From positions 1 through 64,000 of the forward strand of contig NW_027437456.1 of assembly GCF_964204645.1 (NCBI RefSeq): a DNA stretch of 64,000 bases. The letters are read 5' to 3'. Both the position numbers and the translations under genes were made by a program. Of this stretch, positions 18,169-58,200 are shown one piece after another; the stretch's first letter is position 1, and the number at the start of each line of letters is the position of its first letter. The notes under the pieces are model-generated. The model did not search any database, was not told the DNA's origin, and saw only the letters and a list, made by a program, of their open reading frames with translations. This DNA is from Tubulanus polymorphus (Eukaryota; Animalia; Nemertea).

Positions 18169-19787
18169 TGGTATCCACCGCATCAATACACTCACAGGCA
18201 AATACGTTTCATGCCTTGTTATTTTTATATAGTAAAGCGTCACGCCCGCCAATACTGGTCCTTAATGGCCAATTGTTTATCGGAACTTTATAAGTTAAAA
18301 AAAGAATACCTCATCCAGTTAAAAAAAGTTCACACAGGTTCATTTCAGCAGCGTACTAACATGACCCACTTTTGAAAAACTGACATTCAATGACATGTAG
18401 TGACGCCTGCGCACTCGACTGCTTTCTGGACTTTGAGAATTTCAGAGAATTTTCCCAACACATACATCATGCGCATGCGTTAAAAATGGAGACATTGGAA
18501 ACATTACGGTTTTTGCCCTCAATGCTGCCATGTTTGTCACTTCAACAGTTTTTTGAGGCGACTAGCCAAATGTTTTTAGTTACTACTGTCATCAAAACAT
18601 ACTTTGGATTATAAATGTATGCCAAAACAACAGTCAACATCCATCGGATTACAGAACAGTAAGTTTGAGGGAGGTTGATTGTGTTTTAAGGGCTGAAATA
18701 GATGCTCAAAGCTTCAGTCGTCCAAGTAAAAATTCGGGACAAAAATTAACCTCTTTATGACACTTTGCCTGGCCCTAGACGTTGTTTCAGGAACAATGGC
18801 TAGATACTAGACTAAGAAATACCTTGTGTTTATATTCTTTAGCCAATTTATCCGCTAAAAAAACTAAAATTACCCGGTTATTGGTCATTTCCTGAAATTT
18901 TCAAAAACAAATCAAATCGTCGGAAGGAAAGCCTCGAGCGAATACCAGTGCCCTCTACAGGGAATTCCCACGAAGTAACAATAAACGTACGTAGTACCAC
19001 AGGCACTCGCCGATGGGCTTGGAATACAGTTTCTGGGGTTTTTGATAGTGTATTTGTGTTTTCATTCGTTATTCTGCAATAAATCCTGAACCGTGACGAG
19101 TAGGTCTACGATTATACCCATGACTTACTTTTTTCGAGAATCGCTTCACTGTGTTTCCCTTTAAATCCTGAGAATTTAACCGCAAACAAACCATCGGAGT
19201 TATCTTTGGGGGTGGCGAGTGCCGAATACCATACCCCAGTTACCGGATCCCAGGCCTGTATAATATTCTTCATTCTTTTTTTCTGCGTGCGCGTCCTCGC
19301 CCTACTGCGTAACTCTAACAAGTGTGCGCGGTAAGCGGCCAATGCAACAGGAGCGTTAAGGCAAACAAATGTTACTAATTGTTTCTCCTACTCGGCCGGG
19401 TACGTGTACATCTATTAAGTATGAACTGTAATCAAATTTGCTGTCAGTTAATTTCTATATTTCAGGTCTGTTTTTTGTTGTTCCGACGACAGGCCTACGT
19501 ATAGGGAAGCTAGATCACGGTTATATAAGGTATGGGGTAGTTCCTACGTGGGCGACCGGAAGCCCAGAAATGAGAAACAAGGAATTAATTATCTTTCGCC
19601 TTAACAACGTCGTGTACTCTGATTCGCTCGCCAGAACGAAACGCGCAAAATCGCGAACGCGTCTTTGTGCAGAACGCGTTTAAGTCGCGATTTTTGCAGC
19701 GAGAGACGCGCTTAAGGCGCGTCTCTTGTTAGCTTTGGGGATGCACCAAAAATACTTAGTCGCGATTTAGTCGCAGCCACAAGGGAG

Positions 19788-21104: not shown

Positions 21105-24100
21105 CAGGGGCGGATCCAGGGGCATATTTTGACTGCCTTCTAAGAGAAATGAGGGCACCCAAAGGGGGAGCGCGGGGTAACCCCCTCGCCGGTGGGGGTT
21201 TGTGGGGTCTGCCCCAAGAAAATTTTTAATTTTCATGTCCTCAGATGCATTTTCCCAACATCTAGGACATATTTTTCTCAATCCTCACAATCCAAAATAA
21301 AGCCTTAAACACTGATGTAAGCAAAGTCTCCAACCAAAAATCCAAAATGCAGAAAGACATATGTTCAAGATTTATATATATATATATTTATTTTCAGTTT
21401 CATTTTCAGCATTTTTATGGTATGGTTACAACTTACATAATATTACAAGATTGCATAAAGTGAATATTTGTAATACATACTGGAAACAACATTTATGAAA
21501 ATGGCAATTTAAATATTTCCTTATTTAATATTGCATTTTGAGATAATTATCTCAATTATATTATTATATGAGTACATTGCACTAGGATCCTGTTATATAA
21601 TGTACAATGTATGCATAAAATACTATTTTCAATACCGATTTATTGCTTAAATACATATTTGAACTTTATATTTTTCAGTTAAAACACACAGACTCTCATA
21701 AATTTCAAATGAGACATACCCAGATACCAACAAATTGCACCATATTTCCACTATTTTTCAGTTAGCTCACACATTGCAAATGAGACATTTATGAAAGAAA
21801 ATAAAACTACTATATACACTACAAAATAAACATTTATCTCATAAAGTTATCAATATCCAATGTTATTTTTATCAAAATAACTTTAATCTACTGATACTGA
21901 ACTATATTATACTATATAATAATACTGATTGATTCAGCTCTGAATTACAATGCTGAGTAAATCATTCCAGCAAATAAATTCCAAATAATACTTTTCATAA
22001 TCTGACATAATCAACCATATATTTCAAAACATTTTACCACAAACAGCTATTAAAACTTGTAATTTCTGATATTTAACGGTTTATACTGTACACAAAACCA
22101 CAAGCAATAAGAATAAATTCATTAAAAAATTCCCATTAATACATATTTTGTCCTGACAGCAGTAAACCAGTCACAAAGGCAAACAACAATATCTGCTGAA
22201 CACAAAACTCAATCATGTCATGAATACCAGTTCTAGTTTATTATATCTAGCAGCGCCATCTTTCTAGGATGCTGACGGGCAAATATATCAATCACTGCCT
22301 GAATGTCAATTTTCTGGGAACTATAGACTGAAAGGAGAGCTAAGCCATTCATGCGGCTTTGATTCATGGTGCTTCGCAAATAAGTTTTGAGACGTCTCAG
22401 AAGTGAGACAGAGCGTTCACACTCACATGATGTAACGGGCATAGTCCCCAGTAACACTAATGCTGCCCTGATATTGGGAAACAAGTCAGCATCTACAATG
22501 GGTAGGAGTTGTGTAAGATGTTTTGGAACTTCTTTCTTGCTTTCAGCTGTCTTTTTCCAGTAAGATTCCCAAAGATGCAGTTCAACATTCAAAGAACTAG
22601 GTGATGGCAGGTCATCAATGTACTCCATACAGAATTCTTTGAATGGCTTCGCCCATTCTTTCTTAGCTAAAACCGTTGCTGGCAACACGGAGAATGCAGA
22701 AAGAATAGTTTCCTGACCACTGAAAAAACGATCATTTATCTCGAAATACAAATGATCCAGTATTGGTATAGCAATAGCACGTTTGAAGTACTGTTCTACT
22801 GACTCAGCTGGGATGTTGCTTCGCTGAGTCTGACGACCACATGTTCGGGGTTTTTGAATGTCAACTTCAAGCAAACTGGCTAAAGCGGTAGCCTGTTGAA
22901 ACCATAATAGGTAGTAGGAGTCGAGATTTGATCGATATTTCTCGATAGTATCACGGACAGCTTTTAAGCACAAATATGCACGATTGGAATCCTGGTTCGC
23001 GTACTGCAACTTTACGGTCAGACTAGTAGTCACACTCAGACATTCACGTGTCAAGATATAAGCGGCAATGAACGGAAAATTGGTAATCGCATGGTAGAGC
23101 CCATTTGCTTTTACCACAGAATCTGGATTCCAATGCTTTTCTGCATTCATTCTTATCAAATCCAGGGTTTCAACGACAGCCACCACTATATCCGAAAACA
23201 CCTCCATTACATCTAGGCGTTGGACCCATCTAGTTTGACAAATGTACAACAGCTTTGAGCGCTTACTTTCAGGGCACAGTACCTTGATCTTTTCAGAGAG
23301 TGCACCTTGTCGTTTTGGGGAATTTGAAAAAAATCTCGACAATTCCCCCAAAGTGTCCATCATGTTTTTCACCTGTGCAACTGATGCAGTTTTCGTGACG
23401 CAGAGATTAAGACGATGAGATGCACAGTGTACATATTTCACTTTGGGATACTGTGTTTTAATGCGAGTTGACGCACCCTTACATACACCAGACATATTTC
23501 CAGCCCCGTCAAAACATTGTCCTCTACAATCTTTCGTGTCAAGGCCAAGGCCTTCAACTGTTTCTATCAATAGTCGGGCTATTTCTTCCCCTGATGTACC
23601 AGAATCACACCAAATAAACTGCAGGAAAGATTCGTGAACTTCACCATTCGAATCAACATATCTCAGAATGAGAGGCATCTGTTCTATGTTGCTGCAATCC
23701 GATGCCTCATCAGCTAAAATTGAGAAGTAACGGTTCATTTTTATGTCATCTATAATTGTTTTTTGAATCCATTCTTTCAAACAGTCAATCAGTTCATTCT
23801 GAATGGTTTTAGAACGATATGTACTTGTTTTTGAACATTTTTTAAAATGTTCCATCAGTGTTGCATCACCAGCATCGCATCGAAACTCCAATAACTTTTG
23901 AAAATTACCAGAATTACTTTCTAAATCCAGATGTTTCGAGTCATCACGGTGTCCACGCAATGGGATATTTTGATTCCCAAGAAATATGACAGTTTTCAAA
24001 ATGGATTTCAGAATTTTGCGATTTTCAGCAATTCGTTTTTGATTTGTTGTACTCGTTAAATTGTTGACTCCAAGGGTTTGGGATTCCATTACACTGGGAA

Positions 24101-25417
24101 ACATTTTCTCACAGCAAACTGCATCATGATGTACTTTAGAGTTATCCCTATGGGATGTAAATCTAGAACTTGCGCATGTCCAGTCAATAAAGGGAGTCGA
24201 AACTAAACGTTCTAACTTGGCATCGTTTTTTTCTAATGTGCGACCAAAGAAAACACATGGTCGACAGAAAGCACCTGATAGTTCCTCGGAATATGCCAAC
24301 CAATGGAATTGTTTGAGCCAATCAGCATTAAATGAGCGGTTTTTAAGCCATATATGTCCGTTTTGGGAAATTTATACTTTTCTGTCGGCACCCACAAGTT
24401 ACATAAAGCATTGTACTTTTCAGCATCTTTCATTGTCCTTGTTTTGCCAATTAACAATCCAATATCTGAAAACAAAACAACAGATAAAGTCAAATTCTGT
24501 ACATGCACACATTCAAACAAGCAAAACAGAACTTACAAATATTCCTGGAAAGCTCCATAACACGCAATATTTGGCAACCATTCATTGGCCTATAAAAGTT
24601 ATAACTTAATCCAGGGGCGGATTAAGGGGATACGCCGCAATCTTGCCAAATAATTTCTCCAAATGTTTCTTCAGAATAGATAATGGATCCCCCTGTTGAC
24701 ACATGCAGAGAATTAAATAAGAAAATTATCGCATACAAACGTACTCATCATATTATTATTATTTGTGTCACGATTCTCATAGGCAGACATGATTTGATGA
24801 TGATCATTCGATGAAATCTGGGGTACCGGTACACTATCAGTTGGTACAATTACTGGAGTTTCAATCATCACTGCATTAGATGGTGGTGTAATTGATTCCC
24901 TGTCCATGATGTCAGAACTGGATGTCGTGGTTGTTTCGACGATATCATGTGGGTGGTCACCGGCTTCAGCACTCTCCGTGATGTCAGAACTGGATGTCGT
25001 GGTTGTTTCGACGATATCATGCGGATGGTCACCAGTGGCAGCATTAGAGTGATTAACTGGTTCCGCTGAACCACCATTGAAAACTAGAATACCGTAACTG
25101 CGGACATCGGCAACGGAAAACTGCGGACATCGGCATCGGAAGTTTTGATAACGACTCTCAGTTCATGCGGGTTGTAATGTGCCGGCCTGGGGTTACAGAT
25201 CGTTATCTCCAGTGCCCGACTCCCCCCCCCCCCCCCCCACACGAAAACTCATCGGAAAAGGTTCACTTCGAATCACGATTATAATCTATATGCTACTTTG
25301 CTATTGTAGATTTTTTACTATCACTTAAAAATAAAAAATGCGTTCCTTTAAGAGGGACGCTTGGGATTTTTTGACTGCCTTCCGGAAGGCATGGAAGGCA
25401 CCCTGGATCCGCCCCTG
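21105..25417 (-). mobile_element. hAT transposon (THAP12/PRKRIR- or ZMYM1-like transposase clade) nested in the KDZ element
   Basis: 17-bp TIRs caggggcggatccaggg (21105) and ccctggatccgcccctg (25401-25417) enclose the transposase. No matching 8-bp TSD is visible. Confidence 0.85.
22233..24299 (-). CDS. hAT transposase (688-aa open frame; the N-terminus extends upstream through a frameshift near 24345)
   Basis: TTF-type zinc finger WLAYS..GAFCRPC, then PLRGHRD, FSILADEASD, GQCFDGAGNMSG, YVHCASHRLNL and TRW, and the C-terminal dimerisation motif PVTSCECERSVSLLRRLKTYLRSTM. Confidence 0.93.
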   Translation of the reverse strand: MAYSEELSGAFCRPCVFFGRTLEKNDAKLERLVSTPFIDWTCASSRFTSHRDNSKVHHDAVCCEKMFPSVMESQTLGVNNLTSTTNQKRIAENRKILKSILKTVIFLGNQNIPLRGHRDDSKHLDLESNSGNFQKLLEFRCDAGDATLMEHFKKCSKTSTYRSKTIQNELIDCLKEWIQKTIIDDIKMNRYFSILADEASDCSNIEQMPLILRYVDSNGEVHESFLQFIWCDSGTSGEEIARLLIETVEGLGLDTKDCRGQCFDGAGNMSGVCKGASTRIKTQYPKVKYVHCASHRLNLCVTKTASVAQVKNMMDTLGELSRFFSNSPKRQGALSEKIKVLCPESKRSKLLYICQTRWVQRLDVMEVFSDIVVAVVETLDLIRMNAEKHWNPDSVVKANGLYHAITNFPFIAAYILTRECLSVTTSLTVKLQYANQDSNRAYLCLKAVRDTIEKYRSNLDSYYLLWFQQATALASLLEVDIQKPRTCGRQTQRSNIPAESVEQYFKRAIAIPILDHLYFEINDRFFSGQETILSAFSVLPATVLAKKEWAKPFKEFCMEYIDDLPSPSSLNVELHLWESYWKKTAESKKEVPKHLTQLLPIVDADLFPNIRAALVLLGTMPVTSCECERSVSLLRRLKTYLRSTMNQSRMNGLALLSVYSSQKIDIQAVIDIFARQHPRKMALLDIIN

Positions 25418-44482: not shown

Positions 44483-45778
44483 CACAGGGACTTGTCACGA
44501 TTGATAATGGATGAGACCAATGATGGGGGTACCAGTATCCCTGCTACTGTATAATAAAATAACAAGGGTGGCAACAAATTTTCAATCTGACAATGACTTC
44601 TCCACTTCAATCGACTGTAATTCCAAAAATTCTGAACCGATTCACATGAAATAAGCTTTAATACAACCTAGAAGACTTTCTGCTTCGAACGAGCCTTCAA
44701 CCACCACTCTTGGACAATTATCTCACAACGAAATCACCTTTTTTTGACGAGAGATAGCTCAAAATGGAGGTCTACCGATTCTATGGTGGACAGCAAAATG
44801 GTCGTTTTTTTCACTTCAAACGATGATTTCTATGTGAGATCTTAGAGAAAACCCCAACAAACCATACATTTTTTAAAACTACGCGGTCATACTTGTACGC
44901 TTATTTCATTTATTTGTATAATCCACGCGATGGGTGAGCTCACAAGCTCAAAATCGAAAATGAGGACGAACACGGCGTTCAACTTGTCATCAACTGGGCG
45001 GCCATTTATCACGTGATATCGTAGTAACGGGCTAAATATTTCACGCGCACTGATTGGCTTAGAGATTTCGAAAAACATTACAAAATTTATTAAAAGTTCT
45101 GTTAATTAATAAAATATCCGTATTATGAAAATATAGTGCAACATTCGTCTGAGGGGTGGTATTATTAGTAAATATTTCCTTTTTTCAAGTCTACAGACGT
45201 AGACTTGTCGCGGTTCTATTAACATAGCCCGAACCTATTCACGTCACGTGATTAATGGCCGTCAGCGCGATAGTGCGAGGTGACTTTTTCGTATATTTGT
45301 TCGATTTTGAGCTTGTGAGCTCACCCATCGCGTGGATTATACAAATAAATGAGATAAGCGTACAGGTATGACCGCGTAGTTTTAAAAAATGTATGGTTTG
45401 TTGGGGTTATCTCTAAGATTTCACATAGAAATCATCGTTTGAAGTGAAAAATACGACCATTTTGCTGTCCACCATAGAATCGGTACACCTCCAATTTGAG
45501 CTATCTCTCGTCCAAAAACGGAGATTTCGTTGTGAGATAATTGTCCTAGAGTGGAAGTTAAAGGCTCGTTCGAAGCAGAAAGTCTTCTAGGTTGTATTAA
45601 AGCTTATTTCATGTGAATCGGTTGAGAATTTTTGGAATTACAGTCGATTGAAGTGGAGAAGTCATTGTCAGATTGACAATTTGTTGCCACCCTAGTTTTT
45701 TATATTATACAGGGATAGTGGACCTGGTCATTGATATTGGTTTTATTCATTCACTATCAATTGTGACAAGTCCCTGTG
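44483..45778. repeat. About 1.3-kb foldback (inverted repeat arms of about 480 bp)
   Basis: 44560-44957 is a near-identical reverse complement of 45300-45700. Weaker symmetry extends outward to 44483/45778 and inward to 45000-45034/45224-45260. Confidence 0.92.
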
Positions 45779-48438
45779 TCGCAATCAAACAGAAAGTTAG
45801 CATCAGAAGGATGGATCACTTTCAACGTACACAAAATGGCGATCGCCCTTCCGTTGAATTGAATTGCCGTTGTAGGGAATCGGCATACGAAACGGACGGC
45901 ACTCGGACGATAGTCCGATCCGCGCAACAATCCGACGACCATCGTAACACCCCGAAATTGTTTATAGCATTGCAAACACTATTTTATTTAATAACGTATC
46001 ATGAATAAAATTTAAAGATTGGGCTTCATGTATCAGGTAGGCTGTATGAATTTTTTTTCAGTTAAAAATGTAGCAAAATTGAAATTCTTGTTGTTGATAT
46101 AATTCATTTGTTATATAGGCATTTCATTGATCAAATGAATATGAAGATCAGGAGAGCTAATCAGCTGCTTGAAGAAGTTTGTCAGGTAGGGCCTAAATTG
46201 TCATTGTTGTTGTGATGACATATTCTATGTCTTCAACATTTTTTAACAGAAATCACTTTTATTCACTGGTATTTTCTGTTTTAGGTTTATGGTTTTACAA
46301 CATTTATCAGTCATGATGACTTTGATGAATATCTAAATGACTTTTTGTGTGCCGATGGATTTCATTTTAGTCGGCTTGGTATCAAGAAGATGGCGGCTTC
46401 TTTATTTGAAAACATGAGATGGTAAGCAGAATAGTATTTAATTGTAACCGCAAACATGGAGTTTTTCATTAAGACCTTTATCTCATGTGTGACCTGTTAC
46501 TCGGGTTGGTTTTCTATAAGATCAATAAGCAGTAGTGTTTGCAGCTTTCGTTATCTGACTATATGGGTTATTGTGGTTGACAATTCTTCGAAAATACTGT
46601 TTGCTAATTATCTACCAACCGACCAACCAGTAGTTTGACCTAATAAAAAACATGCATTTTGTAATACATCGGTTGAGAATTTTTGGAATTACAGTCGATT
46701 GAAGTGGAGAAGTCATTGTCAGATTGACAATTTGTTGCCACCCTTGTTTTTTATATTATACAGGGATAGTGGACCTGGTCATTGATATTGGTTTTATTCA
46801 TTCACTATCAATTGTGACAAGTCCCTGTGGCGCAATCAAACAGAAAGTTAGCATCAGAAGGATGGATCACTTTCAACGTACACAAAATGGCGATCGCCCT
46901 TCCGTTGAATTGAATTGCCGTTGTAGGGAATCGGCATACGAAACGGACGGCACTCGGACGATAGTCCGATCCGCGCAACAATCCGACGACCATCGTAACA
47001 CCCCGAAATTGTTTATAGCATTGCAAACACTATTTTATTTAATAACGTATCATGAATAAAATTTGAAGATTGGGATTCGCTTGGAAATATGACACATATA
47101 TTTCATGTAAATCGGTCACTTGAAAGAAGAAACAATTAATTAGACCGTTTGAATTTGATTTGTATTTATTTAATTCCGGGATTATAGACTGGTTGCCTGT
47201 CCCATTCAAATTGAAGATAGATACCGGTAACCAGTCTACCTGGATTAAAGCTGTATAGGCAACAAACTCCACATTCACGAATTACGTGGCTGTCAGATTG
47301 CAAAAACCGTTTAATAAACAGACCGCATTCAAGCAAAAAATGGATGCTGAAACCGATTTTTCAAAATGTACGCCCCTAGTGGTTAAAATAGGAACTAATC
47401 ATGTGAGGGGTTCGTTCCATTTAGTAACCAGGTACATGTGAATGAATTTTTATAGAAATCCATTGATACTCCTAGTCGATATAGATGAAAATGCGTTTTC
47501 CAGGGTATTTATAACTGCTTAAGATAAAGTAATGAAATATCGAATGCTTTCATCTTTTGTCTCTCCAAATAAGAAAATTATCATTTTGCCGTAATCTGGC
47601 CAATATTAACACTTGGTGAGAAAATACTTGTGAAAAGATAGTTGGATTTATGCTAACAACTTTTTTATTAACCTTGAATAATGTAACCGAAATAACTGAT
47701 ATTGATTTTCATTACAGGGCCGAAGTCCAGTGAATGTGCGGGATGAGATGGTGTGCCTTTTCAGCAGACTACGATCATTCAACCCACAGTGCCTGATATA
47801 TGTATCAGGTAGGCTGTATGAATTTTTTTCAGTTAAAAATGTAGCAAAATTGAAATTCTTGTTGTTGATATAATTCATTTGTTATATAGGCATTTCATTG
47901 ATCAAATGAATATGAAGATCAGGAGAGCTAATCAGCTGCTTGAAGAAGTTTGTCAGGTAGGGCCTAAATTGTCATTGTTGTTGTGATGACATATTCTATG
48001 TCTTCAACATTTTTTAACAGAAATCACTTTTATTCACTGGTATTTTCTGTTTTAGGTTTATGGTTTTACAACATTTATCAGTCATGATGACTTTGATGAA
48101 TATCTAAATGACTTTTTGTGTGCCGATGGATTTCATTTTAGTCGGCTTGGTATCAAGAAGATGGCGGCTTCTTTATTTGAAAACATGAGATGGTAAGCAG
48201 AATAGTATTTAATTGTAACCGCAAACATGGAGTTTTTCATTAAGACCTTTATCTCATGTGTGACCAGTTACTCGGGTTGGTTTTCTATAAGATCAATAAG
48301 CAGTTGTGTTTGCAGCTTTCGTTATCTGACTATATGGGTTATTGTGGTTGACAATTCTTCGAAAATACTGTTTGCTAATTATCTACCAACCGACCAACCA
48401 GTAGTTTGACCTAATAGAAAACATGCATTTTGTAATAC
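45618..48438 (+). repeat. Recent tandem segmental duplication; the first copy lacks about 730 bp
   Basis: 45618-46025 matches 46669-47075 and 46028-46667 matches 47800-48438. The ORF pairs 45673/46724 and 46456/48227 are near-identical. Confidence 0.92.
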
Positions 48439-50883
48439 AATGATATGTATGTTGTCAACTTTTCAGGAATTTACATGATTGCTATTGAACTGCTGGATGT
48501 TTAATTTTTTTTAAATTACTATCTAAAGGAAACCGATGCAAGTGTGTGAGGAGAATTTTGCTGCAGATGACTATGACTTCAACTATCCTCCCTTATCTAA
48601 TTTCACACGTCCAGTGGAAGTAACCAATGAATTTCCACGTTCATACTCGAGTGTTTGTGCTTTGCAGCCAGCATTATGTAAGTATAAGAATGATACTTAA
48701 AATGGCATTTTCAGTTTAACGCATTGGAACATGTAATGAAAAATATTGGATTATTTTCATTGATTTCAAGCTGAACCAAAATCTGAAAGTGTAGTGATCT
48801 CATGTAGACGAACGAGAATCATTTCAAGGGTTAAAACTGACAAATCAACGAGTACCCGACAATCTAAGAAGAAACATCTCAGAAGACGACATGTGAGGAA
48901 ACAGACAACAGTGAAGAACACTGATTTTAGGACTACAAACCGGTAAATAATCATGATTCCAGATACCATTTCTTCAGAATATTCAATGTACCGCAATGTA
49001 ACCTTTCTATTTTTCAGGTGTGATTGTTTAACTGTGGAGAAAGTAAAGAAGGATATTTGGATTGGTGAGCAGTCTTCAACATATGCAGCTGTTCGTCAAC
49101 CTGCTAAGAGACTGGAGTGTTGGTGCAACAAATTTCATTATGAAAATGACATGGAATTGTTAGATCATGTGATAGATCACCATGTATCAAGGTAAAAACA
49201 TTGTAAAGCAAAGCTGAAATTATTTCTAAAACTTATTACTGTATTTTCAATGAATATGAGTATCTTACTTATATTCATTGCCTTACTAAGGCAGAATACG
49301 CAACAGCTGCACTAATGAATTACGGAATAATAAGTTATTAGGCTCTTAATAATCTTTTTGGTCATTTTACTGTTAGTATGATGTTGTTTGACTTGTCTAC
49401 TTATGAAGTTGTGAATATAATTAATGCGAGATTTTAAATTTCCTTTCAGAGAAAAATTGCTGATAGGAAATATAGAACAGAATTGTAGGAGCAAGAAACC
49501 TAATGACATTACATCAAGGTAAATATCAATTTGGGTGGTCATGAAACAATAACATTTCCCTGATTGATACTGATGGAAATTATTTTTAAGGTCAAGCGGT
49601 GGTGGATATGAAGAGGAAGTTATATTGATCAGCGATGATGAAACCAGCGACGTGAATGCAGAGACTACAACTAATGAGACAACAACACTCAGCGATGGAC
49701 TTGAGCATTTTTCAACATTCAATATTCCAGAAACCAGATCATCAACTAGTGTCGATTTTGTTATTTGTTCTGAAGAGTGCGAGAAAGCAGATCAGTCAAG
49801 ATACACACCACCTTTAAACCAGCTAAACCACATCAAAACTCAACTTCAAGATAGACTGACAAGTGGAACAGGGCACGCACATGTAAAACTTGATTATGGA
49901 TGCTTTAGTTTGGGTGAGATAAACAGGTTTATTTATATTTTAACTATTGTCAAAGCAAAGACAAATGAATTTAAGAAAGTATGTGACTGGTTTAATTCTG
50001 AGCCCTCCAACCACCCTCTTACAGAAACAGTCACCAGTGTTAATAATTTAAGATATTTCTTTGAGTGTGTAACTAAAATGGCCGATGAAAGATTCATTCA
50101 ACTTATGAATTACAGTGCTCAAGTTGATGAATTGCAAACTATGTATTTAGATAAATGGTATGAAGGTTCGATTATGCATGGCTTTGCCAGTTTGATTAAT
50201 CATACCTCTCCCCATGTGTTTGCTGATATTATGAATCAGACATTTTCCCTGTTAATTTCTGACCGTCTTTTAAAAAGGTTTGGAACTATTGAACAATGTG
50301 ATAGAATGATTCTTTTCCTTCATGTTGGTTGCATTAATATTACTGTTTTAAATGCTCACAATGCTAATCATTGGGCCCTTGCGGTTTATGATAAGGCTAA
50401 CAACAAGCTTTTTTATTTGGACACATTGGGATGGTCCTGTCCAATAGCATTAGTGGCTAATATCAATGAATTATGTTCAAATTTAAAACTACCATTGCCC
50501 ACTCTAATTTGTTGCCATGATGCTGAACAGCATAATACAAGCCGCCCAACTGTCAATTGTGGTAGGTGATGTGCACCTCTTTATCGGATTCAAACATGTG
50601 GTTCTGTCTGCGGTCCATCTGCTGTTCTCATTGGATGTCTTGCTGACCAGGATATTGAGGAATTTTCAAACCTAACTAGTTTCAGTCCTGTATCTTCAAA
50701 ACTTGCGTATTTACGTGATATAAGCAAACATTCACATTTTATACGCAAAGTTCTTATTGACTGGATAATTGGACAATCAATTCAGTTGAGTCATATTTTT
50801 TCGACTGAATCTCCAGTGATGCGAACAGAGAATCGTTTAGCATCTAAACTGAAGCGGAAATGTACGAAAATAATCTCAATTCC

Positions 50884-50921
<38 letters not shown>

Positions 50922-50978
50922 GTGATGGTGATGGTGATGGTGATGGTGATGGTGATGGTGATGGTGATGGTGATGGTG
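50884..50978 (+). repeat. (GAT)n(GGTGAT)n microsatellite encoding poly-Asp/Gly-Asp
   Basis: Read directly; it lies in the MULE reading frame of ORF 50786..51001. Confidence 0.95.
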
Positions 50979-53835
50979 AGAAAAACGTCATTCAAAGATG
51001 ATGATAAAATTACTCCAGTATGCCATAATATGTCCACAGTAAGTCATTCAGAATATACACACATTGACCTCAAGAAATCTCAAGGCCCTACTAGAAACAG
51101 CCCTGTAGTAGATGGAAAATGTTTTAACAAGGTAAGTGACTTGATAAGAGGGAAACCAATGATTCATCATCGATACAGGTACAATAAGCATACATTGGAA
51201 TTGAAAGTCACTTTGAAAACTGGAAAGCGGTTGCATAAGACATTCTTATGTACAGATGCTGGTAATGATGATAAAGTTTCAATGGATAAAATCAATGAGT
51301 TTTTGAACAATGGGGAGGCTTGTAATTGGATTCTAGAATCAAATAAAATTCAGTGGTAAGAAGATGGTGTATTAGAAACTGGTGTAGAAACCAAAAATTA
51401 TTTCAGTAAATTTACATTTGATATCACCAAAAAAGTAAAAATGTTTGACAATAAAAATGTGCGTGCTGTTTATCCAGGGAATCAAACAGCTATGAAGGTA
51501 TCGGTTACAGAAAAGGCTGGATGGGGGAAAACTCATAGATTTGATGAAAAATATGAGTTCATATCAGGAATCAATGAAAAACCTGATGGAAAAATTGTTG
51601 AATTGATCATAAAATGTTCATCGAAATCAAATGATTGTCGCTCCGCATGTGGTGAATTACTTAGTAGTTTAGACAGATCAACAAAAGCTATGAACTGTAC
51701 TGCATGTGGTCTAAACTTAGAATTGCCTAATAACATTTGTGAACACTGTGCATCTACGTCGAGTCAGAAATGGATTTTAGATGTTAATGGTAGAAAACTT
51801 TGTAGTACTTGCTACAATTATAAATTGAGAACAAACAGGGATCGGCCAGCCCAGATAAGATTAAATAATCAATCAAAACGCTTTCATCACCCTCATCTAG
51901 TTTGCGATTGGAAATTAAAGCTTGTCTTATATGGTGATAACCTTTCAATGTGGAAGGTATATAAACATTGCGATAATGATAAATATCATAAGAATGTTCC
52001 TGTACAATTAAATAAGCGTCCATCCCTGGCAACCAGAGATAAATGGGATCAACAACGAATTGTACTTAAAGCTACTCCAAAACAAGTTCTTTCTGCTACA
52101 AACAATCAACAGAAAGTCCATTTGTCAAATGAAAATGAGGAAAGCTCCTCATCAAATCATACATTAAAGCAAGTAAGTGATCGATTGCGTTATATCGATA
52201 GGGAGGCTGTTAGAAAAAGTATGCGAAGCCAAGATGATATCCCTTTGATTGGCTCAGATTGGCGCAATACTGAAAAACTATTAGAGACTGAAGTAGAATC
52301 GGTGATTTTATTTCAAAGAGGAGATCGCAGTTTTAAAAGAAATTATCATTTTGTATTAGCTCCTGAAAAAAATCTTTCATATTTATCAAAGTTTGGGCGT
52401 TCGGTTATAGGAATGGATGTTAAACATGATTTCAATGCAGTTAGATTTAAAACAAGCTTTATTACATTTACTGATAGTTTAAATGAAGGTCGTATAGCAG
52501 CAGCTTCAGTGAGCAATTCCGATGATGCAGATTCGCATGCTCTGTCGCTTCAGATTTTATGTGCTAATACACCTTGTCAAAGAAAAGAATGTCAACATCC
52601 TAGAAAGTTCTATATATACAATGATGGCTGTGGTTTTTTCTCAATCCGTCCATGTTCTTTCATTCAAGCCCTTTCTCCTCTGGTTCAACATGACAAAGAT
52701 ACTGCCCTTAAAAGGGGAGCATCATTAAATGGTTTGCTGTCTGTACTGTGTAATTTTCATGCTTTACAGTGAATTCGACGTACTTTGAATGACAATTCAC
52801 AATTGAAATTGCTTATCAGGCCATTAGAGAAAGGATTTAAATGTGTTATGCGCTCATGGGATGAACCTTCTCGCAATATCCTTGCTAAAGAATTTCTTAA
52901 ATTTATAAAGAATAATATCCCTTCAAATTTACTAAGCGATGACTCAAAAAAAAAATTTGATAAATTATCTTGAGACAAATAGGTTTTCATCCGAAACATG
53001 GTCAGACATATTTAATGCTGCGCCATTATATCGTACCATAGCTACTGAACGTCACAATCCCCTTCTTATGACAGACAATGTTACTGAACGAAAATTCAAA
53101 GATATAGATTCAACGTATTTAAGCAATCATCTCAACCGTTTGATTTCAATTTTTGTAGTAAAAATACTCCGTTATGTATTTGATAATGATTTAAAAGCGG
53201 CCAATTTAAATTACCAAAAATCTTCAGAGAAGATTCGAACTATACGAAAGAAGACATAAGTGCGAGAAACCTGTGATAGAGCACTTGAATTAGTAAAGGG
53301 TGGATTTTTGGTTGCGTGTGATGGAGATGGTTGGGGTGTTTTTGAAAGTCCTCGTAGAAAGTCGAATAGAAATAAATGCGGGTCTGAAGATCTATCAGAT
53401 GAGCCGCTGCCTGATCAATTTTTGAAAGTGTCAGAATGTTAGAAGATAGATTACCATCAAGTACACCTATAAGTAGTCAGTTTCTCTCCTCCTGTGATTT
53501 TAATCAGATCTCTAATGAACACAGTTATGATATGATCAGCAAATGTCGCAGTTATGTTGGAGACTTAGATTCACTTGCTGCGAGACTTTATTTTAAGTAT
53601 TTATTCACCTTGGTTCCGGATGCAATACAAGAGAAAATAGGCGATAATTCTCATATAGTTAATCTTCAACTAGGTATTTGTAGCAGCGAAGCATTTATTA
53701 TGAAGGGTCAACCTTACTTCTGCAAACATCTATTTGCCCTAATGGCTCACAACAAGAAACTAAACAGTGTTGAAGCAATCATTTTTTTCTCAGAGTTTAA
53801 AAAAAATCATATACTTTGATAGTTCATTTAAAAAT

Positions 53836-53883
53836 GTTGACTGCCTTCCGGAAGTCATGGAAGGCAACCTGGATCCGCCCCTG
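53836..53883. mobile_element. Solo end of the hAT family seen at 21105-25417, inside the MULE gene
   Basis: ttgactgccttccggaagtcatggaaggcaacctggatccgcccctg is almost identical to 25371-25417. Confidence 0.8.
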
Positions 53884-54885
53884 ATAAATTAGGAAAAACG
53901 GTACTCGATGAAAAGATTGACTTGTCACAAAATGTAATTAGTGAACCAAAATAAACCAGCTGAAAGTGAATTGCAAGTGAATCATAATAAAGAAAACCCC
54001 GACTTAGGTATTGATAATGAAGATGATATTGGTAATGATGACTCGACTGTAGATAAAAAAAACATGTGAAGTTACTTCAGACCTAAAAGAAACAAATAAA
54101 AGTGTTCCTGTCAACACAAATAAGACAGTTCTATGTTCGTTATGCGTAAAAAATAATTCTGAATCTCCTTATATTTGTTCAAGTCGTCCGGAGCTTGATA
54201 AACATATATCTGTTGTCCATGACCTAAAACTTATCATGTGCTCAATATGTTGGGCATCGGGTGTTACTTTATCTTTTCCTAGTATACCACATTTAGAAAA
54301 ACATGTTAAACTTGTACATAAATTCAATAGAGTTAAAAGAGTTAAATACTCAAAGACTAGAAATAAGAATGTCACAGAAAAAATATCAGAGGTAAATAAA
54401 TGTAACAATGAAGTCGATTTGGAGAAATTAACAAACAATATTGGTTCCCCTGGTATTCGAAATATTGCTAAGTTAAAACTAAAAGATGTCTGTAAAGATA
54501 AGAAAGAGAAAAGTCCATCTGAGATTATGGCAGAAACAAAAATACAAACACAATGGAGGTGTCCTGTATGCAAACAGAATTGTAGCTCTAACCCAAGTAA
54601 ACATCAATCAATTGGGTGCGATACATGTGACCAATGGTTTCACTGGAAATATGTTGGTTTGACTGATGAACCATTGACTGAGAAATGGTTTTGTCTTTGC
54701 TGTGACCCGAACATGTAAATTCCTTCGATTTTGCTTTGAGAAAGTTGCGGAGCGAGTACCTGGGAATAAAAACGTGGGAAGGGTGATTTCTCTGTGACTT
54801 TTTTGAAGTGCAGCAATTCTCTTACAAGAAAAACAAGAAATCAAAGTCTGTCACTCCAGGGCTGACGTTTTCTTTTTTTACCGCA

Positions 54886-55213
54886 TTATGTGATAGTAGA
54901 TTTCATTGAGTGAAAATTGTTATGTGATAGTAGATTTCATTGAATGAGAGTGGTTAAGTGATAGTAGATTTCATTGAGTGAGAGTTGTTATGTGATAGTA
55001 GATTTCATTGAGTGAGAGTTGTTATGTGATAGATTTCATTGAGTGAGAGTTGTTATGTGATAGTAGATTTCATTGAGTGAAAATTGTTATGTGATAGTAG
55101 ATTTAATTGAGTGAGAGTTGTTATGTGATAGTAGATTTCATTGAGTGAGAGTTGTTATGTGATAGTAGATTTCATTGAGTGAGAGTTGTTATGTGATAGT
55201 AGATTTCATTGAG
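54886..55213 (+). repeat. 34-bp tandem minisatellite (about 9-10 units)
   Basis: Unit ttatgtgatagtagatttcattgagtgagagttg. Confidence 0.95.
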
Positions 55214-58200
55214 ATCTAATGTTTAATACAAACTTGTGGATTCATCAACATCTTTCTTTTTTCAGATGGATTTATCTGCATGTGGGTTTATTTATCCCTT
55301 TTCTTATTCTGCCCATCCCTCTCAACATGTACCCTCATGTATTTACATTCCATCACATTGTGTTGCGTAATAGTTATTGAAATAAATATACAGCTGTACA
55401 ATTTAAACTTTCATCTCTTTTAGCTTTATATGGTATTGTATATTGTATAACAATTATCAAAATTAATATTCAATTTAAACTTTTATCTTTTAGCTTTATA
55501 TGAAAAGGTAATGAAATTCATGTTTTAACTATATACATGTACTACACATTCACTTGTAAACATTCTTGCACGCGTACAATATTCTTCGTGCTGGTTTCTT
55601 ACTGGTGCTTTTGTTGCTTAGGTTTAATATCTCACATCTCTATGTACAGTCAACCCCCCTCCTCGATATACTGCGCCCAAATCGGTGCAGGACAATTTTC
55701 GCTGTGTAAAGAGTATGGCAGTATATCGGCGTGTGTTTTACTATATATTTGTATGGAGTAATACATAGAGCAAACCTGGTCGTAGGCATGTGTGGCGGTA
55801 TATGGGAGGGCGGGGCGGTATATAGGGGTAGACTGTACTTCTTTCACTTTAATATTATTTATATGATTTATTCCAGTGGTATTGTTTTCTCTTTACATCT
55901 TTGTTGTTCTTGTTTTACTTTGATTATAGACGTATTGTTTTTCTATACATCTGTGTTGTACTTTTTCTACTTTGATATATTATTTATTATAGATGTATTG
56001 TTTTTCCCTACAATTTTGTTGTACTTGTTTAAGTTATGTATTGTTTTTATAAATCCTCGGTAGAGAGTCGAGTTAAATAACCATAAAAGCGTAAACATGA
56101 TGCATCTCATTTTCAAATGAGGAAATAAGTTTATAAATAATGAACGTTTTCATAAAACAAGTGACTACAAATGGATAACAAGATACCTTGTTCCTGAAAA
56201 CGTTCTTTATTAATGAACTTATTTACTCGATTGAAAATGAGATTCATCGTGTTTATACTTTTATGGTTATTGTTTTTATACTTACATCTTCGGTGTACTT
56301 TCTCACTTCAATGCATAAATTGATTCAAGATGTATTGTTTTTTTACATTGTCAGTGTACTGTTGACTTGAATGTATGTATGTTTTCTACGTGTATGTTTT
56401 TTAGATGCCCCAAAAGACATGTGTACTTTAAGATCATGTAAATCAAATGATCTTCAACCTTGTAATTATGGCTATTTCCAAAATCTCGATGTATTAATTA
56501 GGCAGCCAAGAAAATTCACCCCAATCAGTCGCTTGCCGGTTCAGACTGACTGAAGATTGTTTCGAATGAACCGGAACCGAATTTCCCAATTATGTACTTC
56601 GATTTAAACAAAAAATTCTGTAAACTCGACCGCCGATCACACAACTATATCTGTACTTCGATTTCCGATTTCGAAATTAAACCCCCTGTTTCGCTCCCGG
56701 CAGGTGTGGTGGGTTTGTCTCAATCGAAAGATCGAACGAAATTTACCAACCAAATAAATAACAGGGACAATCCCTATTTTAAGATAAAAAAATATCATGT
56801 AAATCAAAAAATAATCTAAAACCAATTGCTTAAATGATGTGTTTTGGTTTTGCATCAGTGTCTTTGTACACTATAGATAGGTAAACATTGAAGTTACTGG
56901 TATTGCTGTTAGCATTTATGTTGACAAAACTATAATGGTATCCCCTAACTATTTTCTAATGTACATGTACTAGAAGTTAAGCTAGAATAATTTTGGAGCT
57001 TGGTGCATTATTTTCCACAGATAACTTAGTAGATCATTGTGCAGTATTATGAGAATAAGTTGGTATTATTGCATTCACAATTAATTATGATTAAAATTAA
57101 TTACAATTTATTAATATTGGTATTATTGCAATCACAGAGGTACTTTTATTTCACTGCTTTTGTGGCTGTTGTGGGGTGAGTACCTGGGAACTAAAACGTG
57201 GGAAGGGTACTTTCTTCATGACTTCCTAGAGGTAGTGGTTTAATTTTTACCACTAGAAACTTGTTTGATAAAAACATTCTGTCAACTATATGTCTAGATA
57301 ATCTCATCTTATGTTTATACGAACAAGTGAATTATTAAAATAAATTGATTCCATTCATATTATATATTTCTCTAGTTATTCAATCAATCAGGAGCCTAGT
57401 TCCATAGGTGTGAGTTATGATTCGACCAATTTTAACCCACAACCAACACAACAGGATCACAGCATTCTACGATTTTGCCAATAATTGCTTAAGAGGATCA
57501 TTTGTATTTTTGAGGATGACAGGTGTTCAAGTGGGCTTCCTGTAAGCTGAAGATATAGGTCTATACCGGTACATTGAAAAAAATGATGTATTTTTCTGTT
57601 ACTCATTCGGGATTCGAACCTTGCACATACATACACCCTGGGTTTATCAAAGTTTATTATTTCATATTCGGGATGCTATAACATTTTTACACGGCAAACA
57701 ATAAACCAGTGACACTTACATCATTAAAGTTCATGTCGAAACGGTTTGAAATACGATGGGTAATTTTCGGGATTCGAACCTAATAGCGCCACTTAAAAGA
57801 TGAACCAGCGCAATAAGATCAATATTTCATCAATATTTTACGGGATTCGAACCTAATAGAAATTGCGTAGAAACTACAGCGACTTATAGTCATTAAAGTT
57901 CACATGCTGTTCACATGTAGTGACGCATGCGCCCTCTGCCGATTTCTCGACTTAGAGCAATTTCCTGCACTGACTAATGCACATGCGTCAGCTAGAAACG
58001 GAGACTTGGGGAACTTTACGGTTTTTGCGATAACTATAAGATTACGCAGAGCAAAACAGTTCCGTCGGTTCCGCGATGTTTATAGTTCCACTTGATAGTA
58101 GTGTAAATTTTATTTGTTTCACAGCTATGATTTTCTAATATTTAACATTAAAAATTTAAAAAAGTAGTTTCACAATAGATGATTTGATAGCAAAGGTAAA

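Follow-up and report, generated by a model that had tools for sequence, protein, structure and literature searches.

A dead copy of a giant Mutator-superfamily transposon with predicted esterase, Ulp1-like, GATA and PHD modules in the ribbon worm Tubulanus polymorphus

We analysed a 64,000-nucleotide (nt) stretch of the genome of the nemertean Tubulanus polymorphus (contig NW_027437456.1 of assembly GCF_964204645.1, positions 1 to 64,000 of the forward strand), which is called the window hereafter. The segment from about 47692 to 58028 is very probably an immobile relic of a giant Mutator-superfamily DNA transposon, 5'-truncated, locally rearranged and internally mutated. The original prediction, made from the letters of the window, had proposed a Mutator-like mega-transposase fused to SGNH hydrolase, SUMO-protease, GATA and PHD domains at 47718-54718. 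The element does not end at 54718; it continues through a minisatellite to a 3' terminal inverted repeat (TIR) at 57913-58028.

The relatives of this locus in its own genome (268 Mb) were collected by a protein search with a 470-amino-acid (aa) open piece of the giant exon, and 61 matches were obtained. The copy termed C6 carried an uninterrupted open reading frame (ORF) of 1787 aa (L017:1168-6528, minus strand) with 90% identity to the window piece. A sister family was represented by at least seven uninterrupted 1918-aa frames, which had equal scores and 53% identity to the window piece; the 1918-aa frame was identical over its own length to part of a T. polymorphus RefSeq protein. Two sister-family copies were 99.8% identical across 11.4 kb, and their similarity ended abruptly. 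At the points where it ended, a TIR of 44 bp beginning GCAAAAGG was found, flanked by a 9-bp direct duplication (GATCAAATC at the first insertion and CGTATGGCA at the second). In the family of the window, the C6 and C7 copies had a common 5' end, and a genome search with this end located the inverted end of C6 at a distance of 21.6 kb. The TIR of this family was approximately 125 bp long and began with GCAAAAAC, and the 9-bp duplication of C6 was GAGACGAAG. Thus, a 9-bp target-site duplication (TSD) was present at all three insertions examined, which lies within the Mutator and Mutator-like element (MULE) range of 8-11; the TIRs began with GCAAAA in both families, and the intact members were 12-22 kb long. 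The intact copies that the original prediction had proposed to look for, with the same domain order, TIRs and TSDs of 9-11 bp, therefore exist as the 1787-aa and 1918-aa ORFs with TIRs of 44-125 bp and 9-bp TSDs.

A search of the window and the C6 copy for the sister-family TIR gave no match, since the two families differ in their TIRs. Likewise, no inverted repeats were found when the 20 kb around the C6 copy were searched, because the C6 element is 21.6 kb long and contains nested insertions. The search with the C6/C7 5' end gave at least 151 TIR-like candidate places in the genome, and shorter derivatives with C6-type ends are therefore probably common. Just outside the C6 5' end (L014:5818-7500) lies a 1.68-kb repeat that is not related to the element and has over 40 copies with 93-98% identity.

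Positions 57913-58028 of the window, when reverse-complemented, were 76-78% identical to the opening 114 nt of C6 and of C7. An exact search for the terminal 20-mer pattern hit the window at two right ends only, this 3' TIR and 18497-18516, where chance alone would give 0.03 occurrences. Together, the reverse-complement TIR match and the terminal 20-mer place the end of the window element at 58028. The minisatellite before the 3' end was much longer in the C6 copy than in the window, and the sister family had its own tandem array at the same position before the 3' TIR. The other right end is a TIR of the same type (18324-18516, minus strand) with 85% identity to the C6 TIR over 175 nt and the exact terminal 20-mer. 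It grouped with equally similar copies elsewhere in the genome and is probably a non-autonomous relative.

The transposase core was compared with ordinary MULEs by means of two profiles, one from an alignment of 45 giant-core sequences and the other from seven ordinary MULEs of the same genome. As determined by hhalign, the two profiles matched with a Prob of 96.8% and an E-value of 2e-10 over 200 columns, and the first Asp, the second Asp, the CxxH and the Glu region were in register. The motifs of the core were GxDxKxDF at the first Asp and a second Asp followed after 19 aa by CxFH, with the same spacing as in ordinary MULEs. An AlphaFold (AF2) model of the core built from the 45-sequence alignment had a predicted local distance difference test (pLDDT) score of 88.5 and a predicted template modelling (pTM) score of 0.87; it replaced an earlier model from five sequences, which had a pLDDT of 43 and was unusable. 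The best fold match of the AF2 core was the IS256-family transposase ISCth4 (Z 12.1, 256 residues), followed by the hAT transposase Hermes (Z 10.5) and retroviral integrase cores (Z approximately 9). In bacteria, the kin of Mutator is the IS256 family. The alignment to MULEs, the ISCth4 fold match and this kinship thus support the core as a predicted Mutator-superfamily DDE transposase that lies beyond the reach of Pfam's MULE model (PF10551). The superfamily's DDE motif order, 9-bp TSD and TIRs are all present; the PF10551 gathering score is not reached. The Mutator-like label of the original prediction was therefore borne out by the profile alignment, by the TSDs and by the structure prediction that it had suggested.

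The alignment by hhalign further exposed a conserved Cys/His-rich insertion of approximately 30 residues (N-x-P-C...C-x-H-P...C), located in the RNase H fold between the first and the second Asp (window approximately 52560-52690; residues approximately 955-995 of the L017 ORF). At least 90% of 33 distant relatives retain two Cys and the His of this insertion, which is absent from canonical MULEs. To judge from these residues, the insertion may form a zinc site. Among these 33 longer and more distant relatives, five had weak PF10551 matches (E 8e-5 to 4e-3 in four, best 2.3e-8 in one), three had SWIM and three had the ZSWIM1-3 RNase H-like domain. No PDB sequence was matched by the core profile. 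A Zisupton/KDZ identity was also considered, prompted by the pairing of SWIM and Ulp1, and was set aside in view of the lack of a profile match and of the 9-bp TSD. The TSD of Zisupton is 8 bp. In the KDZ test, the intact ORFs showed no Pfam family except PHD and GATA at E <= 0.1.

The features of the window copy are as follows.

46028-46668, plus strand: local duplicate of 47800-48439 (self-blastn, 99.4% over 641 nt), which also aligns to the intact copy.
47692-47799, plus strand: first bases collinear with intact copies (blastn against the C6 copy).
47718-47810, plus strand: equivalent of esterase exon 2 (GRSPVNVRDEMVCLF...IYVSG), in the open frame 47706-47870 and homologous to L014:4565-4666 (minus strand) of the intact copy.
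47880-47956, plus strand: equivalent of esterase exon 3 (..MNMKIRRANQLLEEVCQ), with the donor GT after 47956 and an approximate acceptor.
48056-48192, plus strand: esterase exon 4 with SGNH block V (DGFHFSRLG, with the putative catalytic Asp and His); counterpart L014:4129-4266 (minus strand) in the intact copy.
48529-49518, plus strand: four short linker exons (48529-48677, 48771-48942, 49018-49191 and 49450-49518), GT-AG throughout and in a single frame.
49591-54718, plus strand: giant last exon, broken; its homologue is the intact 1787-aa ORF of C6.
49991-50665, plus strand: predicted Ulp1/SENP-like cysteine protease domain (H, D, Q, C; family profile against PDB), broken by TGA at 50567.
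50866-50997, plus strand: (GAT/GGT)n microsatellite, longer than in the intact copy and frame-shifting (repeat scan and alignment).
51738-51848, plus strand: predicted GATA-type zinc finger, CX2CX17CX2C (51738-51815), with a basic tail (Pfam below cut-off; family profile against PDB).
52188-53780, plus strand: predicted DDE/RNase H-like transposase core (hhalign, AF2 model and fold matches; coordinates projected from the alignment).
53679-53729, plus strand: SWIM motif (CxC..CxH), with the second Cys changed to Ser in the window copy.
54140-54330 (approximate), plus strand: two C2H2-like fingers (CX2C...HX4H), from the window ORFs.
54560-54703, plus strand: C-terminal PHD finger (Pfam PF00628).
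54886-55213, plus strand: subterminal minisatellite, 34-bp unit x 9.7 (Tandem Repeats Finder, TRF); 54852-55267 in a second repeat scan.
57913-58028, minus strand: 3' TIR, with the element end at 58028 (...CGGTTTTTGC; match to C6/C7 ends and terminal 20-mer).

The six GT-AG junctions of the original prediction (47956/48056, 48192/48529, 48677/48771, 48942/49018, 49191/49450 and 49518/49591) were all present with good flanks. They were phase-compatible, and the exons in order gave one uninterrupted frame from the esterase exons into the giant exon. This frame was read from the joined translation; the similarity searches used single exons or ORF pieces. The third linker exon (49018-49191) held a C2H2-like motif, ECWCNKFHYENDMELLDHVIDHH, a homologue of which was found in the upstream exons of the RefSeq models P0001 and P0005, and open segments equivalent to the linker exons were present in the intact copy. 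Along the giant exon, the Ulp1-like domain is followed by the acidic microsatellite, the GATA finger, the MULE-type DDE core, SWIM, the two C2H2-like fingers and PHD. In the intact members, the last exon of the multi-exon gene was 5.4-5.8 kb long and encoded these predicted domains in the same order. The projected catalytic residues in the window were D at approximately 52416, D at approximately 52692, CxxH at approximately 52749-52760 and E at approximately 53086. All motifs that had been listed for this exon (the Ulp1-like triad, GATA, D/D/CxxH/E, the two C2H2-like fingers and PHD) were recovered in the window or its intact paralogue, and the description of the SWIM motif as a remnant was apt, with one Cys lost in the window.

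The motif content of the 5-kb exon thus agreed with the original prediction, but the exon is not open. The giant exon of the window had 89.6% nt identity to the intact 1787-aa ORF, and the scan of ORFs and frames resolved 49574-54718 (plus strand) into a chain of open pieces whose frame changed along the way. The alignment to the intact copy projected six in-frame stops in the giant exon; four of them (50567, 51357, 52770 and 53257) coincided with frame breaks in the three-frame scan, and the other two come from the projected alignment only. Furthermore, the GAT/GGT microsatellite had grown by 115 nt at approximately 50902-51053 and shifted the frame, smaller indels relative to the intact copy were found at 52946 (+1), 53419 (-1), 53947 (-5) and 54055 (+1), and about 0.35 kb was lost at approximately 53778-53884. 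Because of these stops, frameshifts and the deletion, the window copy is dead; it is unable to move, and none of the activities proposed below is left to it.

The 5' region of the window copy was also damaged. In the blastn comparison with the C6 copy, collinearity with the intact copies began at 47692, and the first 1.1 kb of the intact element, which comprises the 5' TIR and esterase exon 1, was missing. The exon-1 peptide of the intact copy had only two matches in the genome (the C6 and C7 copies), and none on the contig of the window. A search with the terminal pattern revealed no plus-strand (5') TIR terminus within the window. The duplicate at 46028-46668 repeats the last esterase exon along with part of the intron that follows; it belongs to the rearranged 5' region and is not an additional gene. 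A second local duplication was detected by self-blastn, in which 45617-46027 equalled 46668-47078 at 99%. The spot near 47072, where a possible degenerate GDSL had been suggested, lies inside this duplicate, and that suggestion was not supported, the exon-1 peptide being absent from the contig. Nearby, a foldback-like inverted repeat pair of about 480 nt with 91% identity was observed at 44483-44958 and 45300-45778, with a further partial copy at 46668-46830. The whole set belongs to the rearranged sequence that stands in place of the element's 5' end.

The accessory domains were evaluated at the family level. The Ulp1-like family profile matched yeast Ulp1 (1euv, E 4.4e-5) and SENP1/2/5 (E 0.01-0.05) in the PDB. 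The catalytic His and Asp aligned with those of 1euv, the Gln-x5-Cys spacing was as in Ulp1, and H263, D280, Q337 and C343 were invariant in the family alignment. The N-terminal domain is thus supported as a predicted protease of the Ulp1/SENP type (peptidase C48, clan CE). The GATA region profile matched GATA-3 (E 1e-12) and a dozen other fingers, including GATA-1 (E 5e-6) and GATA-1/2/4 and AreA (E 1e-5 to 1e-7). With single sequences, the Pfam GATA scores were 17.5-17.9 bits, under the cut-off, and the window gave an E-value of 0.0023. The PHD finger (PF00628, cut-off 24 bits) scored 28.5 bits in the intact copy and 20.5 bits (E 0.0005) in the window. The SWIM motif, CxC...CxH, was invariant in the family alignment and aligned with that of the relatives P0110 and P0156, whose Pfam SWIM matches fall in that part of the protein. 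The Cys and His of the two C2H2-like fingers were invariant as well. When the ORF pieces of the window were run against Pfam, only weak GATA and weak PHD matches were obtained, with no MULE, peptidase C48 or SWIM match. The Ulp1, GATA, SWIM and PHD assignments, as judged from the family profiles and alignments, are therefore supported for the family, and the SUMO-protease, GATA and PHD labels of the original prediction fit the family profiles and the intact copy.

The predicted esterase module was examined in the intact members. In the C6 copy, four esterase exons lay between the 5' TIR and the giant exon on the same strand, with FFSDSML as block I, HGGTNN as block III and DGLHFS as block V; block II (RSGST / PGGT) was assigned by eye only. 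Exon 1 of the intact element carries blocks I-III, and the window copy retains only the part after block III. The sister family had a diverged esterase in the same place, with the motifs ADS, GTNN and DLLH. The Ser, Asp and His of the putative active site are thus retained in intact members of the families. A tblastn search with the sister-family esterase against the family of the window gave nothing; because of the shortness of the exons and the extent of sequence divergence, the homology between the families was instead read block by block by eye.

Single esterase exons were too short for Pfam to decide the family. The assignment of the predicted module to SGNH/GDSL is settled by the RefSeq models: the sister-family model P0007 (215 aa) scored 39.2 bits against Lipase_GDSL_2, with a cut-off of 32.9, and also matched the OSK domain in Pfam (E 5e-5). 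In the PDB, P0007 weakly matched the OSK domain of Oskar (E 0.002) and, over nearly its full length, the esterase 4c1b of the ORF1p of a long interspersed element (LINE) (E 0.013). The protein-atlas neighbours of the esterase were animal GDSL clusters, some of them labelled PAF-acetylhydrolase-like. RefSeq isoform X1 (2196 aa; P0005 and P0008, with at least four accessions at three loci) joins the esterase, the linker exons and the whole transposase, and the SGNH hydrolase part of the original prediction is thereby upheld at the level of gene models. Among the papers covered by our full-text searches (Repbase entries not included), none described an SGNH esterase in a eukaryotic DNA transposon.

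Relatives in other animals were then considered. A word-based search with the core returned only four uncharacterised proteins, one from Tubulanus, two from the limpet Patella caerulea and one from the mantis shrimp Oratosquilla. An exhaustive profile search of 1.84 billion representatives yielded 200 proteins at E <= 0.001, of which 23 reached E <= 1e-30, and added the crabs Scylla and Portunus to the named relatives. Every named relative is listed as uncharacterised or hypothetical in RefSeq and other sources. The Scylla paramamosain and Portunus trituberculatus relatives (P0023, P0162-P0164) formed a single 90%-identity cluster, which could mean a domesticated gene conserved among portunid crabs or a recent horizontal spread. 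A Patella caerulea relative was flanked by inverted repeats of approximately 170 bp with 86-89% identity (L036:6873-7042 versus 23033-23194 and 24773-24938), suggesting an element of 16-18 kb with long TIRs. Just upstream of the 2200-aa relative P0019, at L037:9326-9454 (plus strand), an exon-like open piece with an SGNH block III motif (LIIHVGLND) was observed behind an extended microsatellite-like array. This hints that linkage to an esterase may extend beyond ribbon worms.

A more far-reaching reading, which we would put at somewhat less than even, concerns the family as a whole. The elements would form a deep, Pfam-invisible Mutator clade with a patchy distribution in protostomes (ribbon worm, limpet, mantis shrimp and crabs), whose ribbon-worm lineage would have recruited the esterase-plus-PHD pair known from CR1/L2 LINEs, the esterase being an active N-terminal fusion. 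Several observations weigh against our main account of a Mutator-superfamily element with these modules. PF10551 did not match the intact giant ORFs at E <= 0.1, and a PF10551 profile search of the genome gave 75 matches to ordinary MULEs, with the giant loci not among them. The Pfam models for Peptidase_C48 (PF02902) and SWIM likewise did not match the intact ORFs, and the functions of all accessory domains are deduced from their sequences. Esterase exons were looked for upstream of the Patella, Oratosquilla and L038 relatives and were not found. Besides isoform X1, the RefSeq models at the sister-family copies include proteins with the esterase alone (P0007, 215 aa; P0009, 237 aa) and an isoform X2 (1995 aa) with the transposase alone. 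Moreover, three public runs that hold the locus gave DNA-like contigs across the introns and no splice joints; the only joints in these runs were two indels with AA..CC and AA..TT ends, which are not splice-site ends. In the contigs of all three runs, 82 bp of an intron of the intact copy (L017:8282-8363) were skipped with AA..TT ends, which is an indel between copies or alleles and not splicing. The presence of the fusion in one protein comes from gene prediction, and the fusion may be an artefact of prediction, or one product among several.

The foremost alternative, which we consider a serious but still doubtful one, is a unit with two products, in which a short ORF1-like esterase and a separate transposase are made from alternative transcripts or starts and the in-frame junctions are rarely or never used. 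The separate esterase and transposase models of the sister family and the lack of splice joints in the DNA-like runs agree with it, and the esterase intron positions differ between the two families. However, the six phase-compatible GT-AG junctions keep the frame open even in the dead copy, the intact copy has open linker exons, and isoform X1 predicts the fusion in several accessions from three loci.

The family could also belong within Rehavkus, the PHD- and minisatellite-bearing sister of MULEs, and not among the canonical MULEs. The anatomical hallmarks given in PMC6446971 are all shared, as is a similarly large size. Nevertheless, the DDE blocks differ by eye, the spacing from Asp to CxxH is MULE-like here, and the core aligns significantly with canonical MULEs of the same genome; we therefore regard this placement as unlikely, a little more so than the unit with two products.

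It is very improbable that the esterase exons in the window are a fragment of a CR1/L2-type LINE beside the transposon. A LINE ORF1p esterase is among the nearest solved relatives, and the 5' region of the window is rearranged, but C6 and C7 have these exons between their TIRs, in the same order and on the same strand, the sister family has a diverged version between its own TIRs in copies that are 99.8% identical end to end, and exon 1 occurs at only two giant-element copies in the whole genome. The exons thus lie inside the TIRs in two diverged families and do not form the separate element that the original prediction had named as a way to fail. The least probable alternative, a single-copy host gene domesticated from a transposase, can be set aside: the 90%-identity cluster of two crab genera could be a conserved host gene there, but the locus studied here is multi-copy with TIRs, TSDs and near-identical young copies, and the window copy is full of stops. 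The core likewise relates to MULEs, so the two other outcomes that would have spoken against the original prediction, a core unrelated to MULEs and a single-copy gene, were not found.

On the main account, the intact element would work as follows. The DDE core would perform cut-and-paste transposition with a 9-bp staggered cut at the target. The GATA, SWIM and C2H2 fingers would bind the TIRs or subterminal repeats, and the PHD finger would anchor the complex on the tails of histone H3. SUMO or a similar modifier would be stripped by the Ulp1-like domain either from the transposase itself or from host factors for silencing or repair. The esterase would be made as the N-terminal part of the fused protein (isoform X1) or else as a short isoform of its own; its role could be lipid- or membrane-related, as has been proposed for the ORF1p esterase of CR1/L2 LINEs. 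The chromatin-interacting role suggested by the original prediction is likewise deduced from the domains.

If the more far-reaching reading is true, two unrelated classes of mobile elements converged on, or exchanged, the same accessory toolkit, and a second, independent system would be available for testing the role of the LINE esterase. A related esterase in a cut-and-paste transposon, with its putative catalytic residues kept in families that are 53% identical, suggests that the module serves mobile elements generally and not reverse transcription in particular. The family shows how far a transposase may grow by domain gain, with a predicted protease, four kinds of zinc finger, a putative histone reader and an esterase, and annotation based on Pfam misses the catalytic core of such elements. 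The near-identical 12-kb copies suggest recent activity in the ribbon worm. The window copy alone is a dead remnant without such importance.

Compared with known systems, the giant element shares with MULEs (MuDR, Jittery, Hop, Phantom and others) and IS256 the D...D...CxxH...E order, a SWIM motif after the core, the 9-bp TSD and long TIRs. With 1787-2196 aa, the predicted protein exceeds those of MULEs three- to fourfold and is invisible to PF10551, and the element adds the Cys/His insertion, GATA, the Ulp1-like domain, two C2H2-like fingers, PHD and the esterase exons.

Rehavkus elements have a 9-bp TSD, TIRs of 26-400 bp, one ORF with PHD and a minisatellite before the 3' TIR; they are 5-18.5 kb long, have been reported from insects and an annelid, and are a little-studied group that serves as an outgroup to MULEs (PMC6446971). 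The giant element resembles them in its 9-bp TSD, long TIRs, transposase PHD, minisatellite before the 3' TIR, large size and protostome hosts. In contrast, when the printed blocks were compared by eye, the first-Asp block of Rehavkus read DATGS and its C(A/C)AH was preceded by a long spacer, and the esterase, Ulp1 and GATA are not in the table of Rehavkus group features in PMC6446971.

Ulp1 domains are known from Mutator elements of plants (KI-MULE/CUMULE), hydra and lancelet, and Ulp1 together with PHD from Ginger1 (PMC2836005). These transposons likewise carry an Ulp1-type protease, and sometimes PHD, on a DDE transposon. The Ulp1 domain of Ginger1 is C-terminal, whereas that of the giant element is predicted to be N-terminal to the core and is accompanied by GATA, SWIM, C2H2 and the esterase. 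Finally, esterase and PHD modules are known from the ORF1p of CR1/L2/Jockey-superfamily LINEs (PMC3905857, PMC4120745). The giant element has the same accessory pair of SGNH esterase and PHD, with an esterase that aligns nearly end to end with 4c1b. LINEs are retrotransposons that carry these modules in a separate ORF1 protein, whereas the giant element is a DNA transposon in which they would stand at the two ends of a predicted polyprotein.

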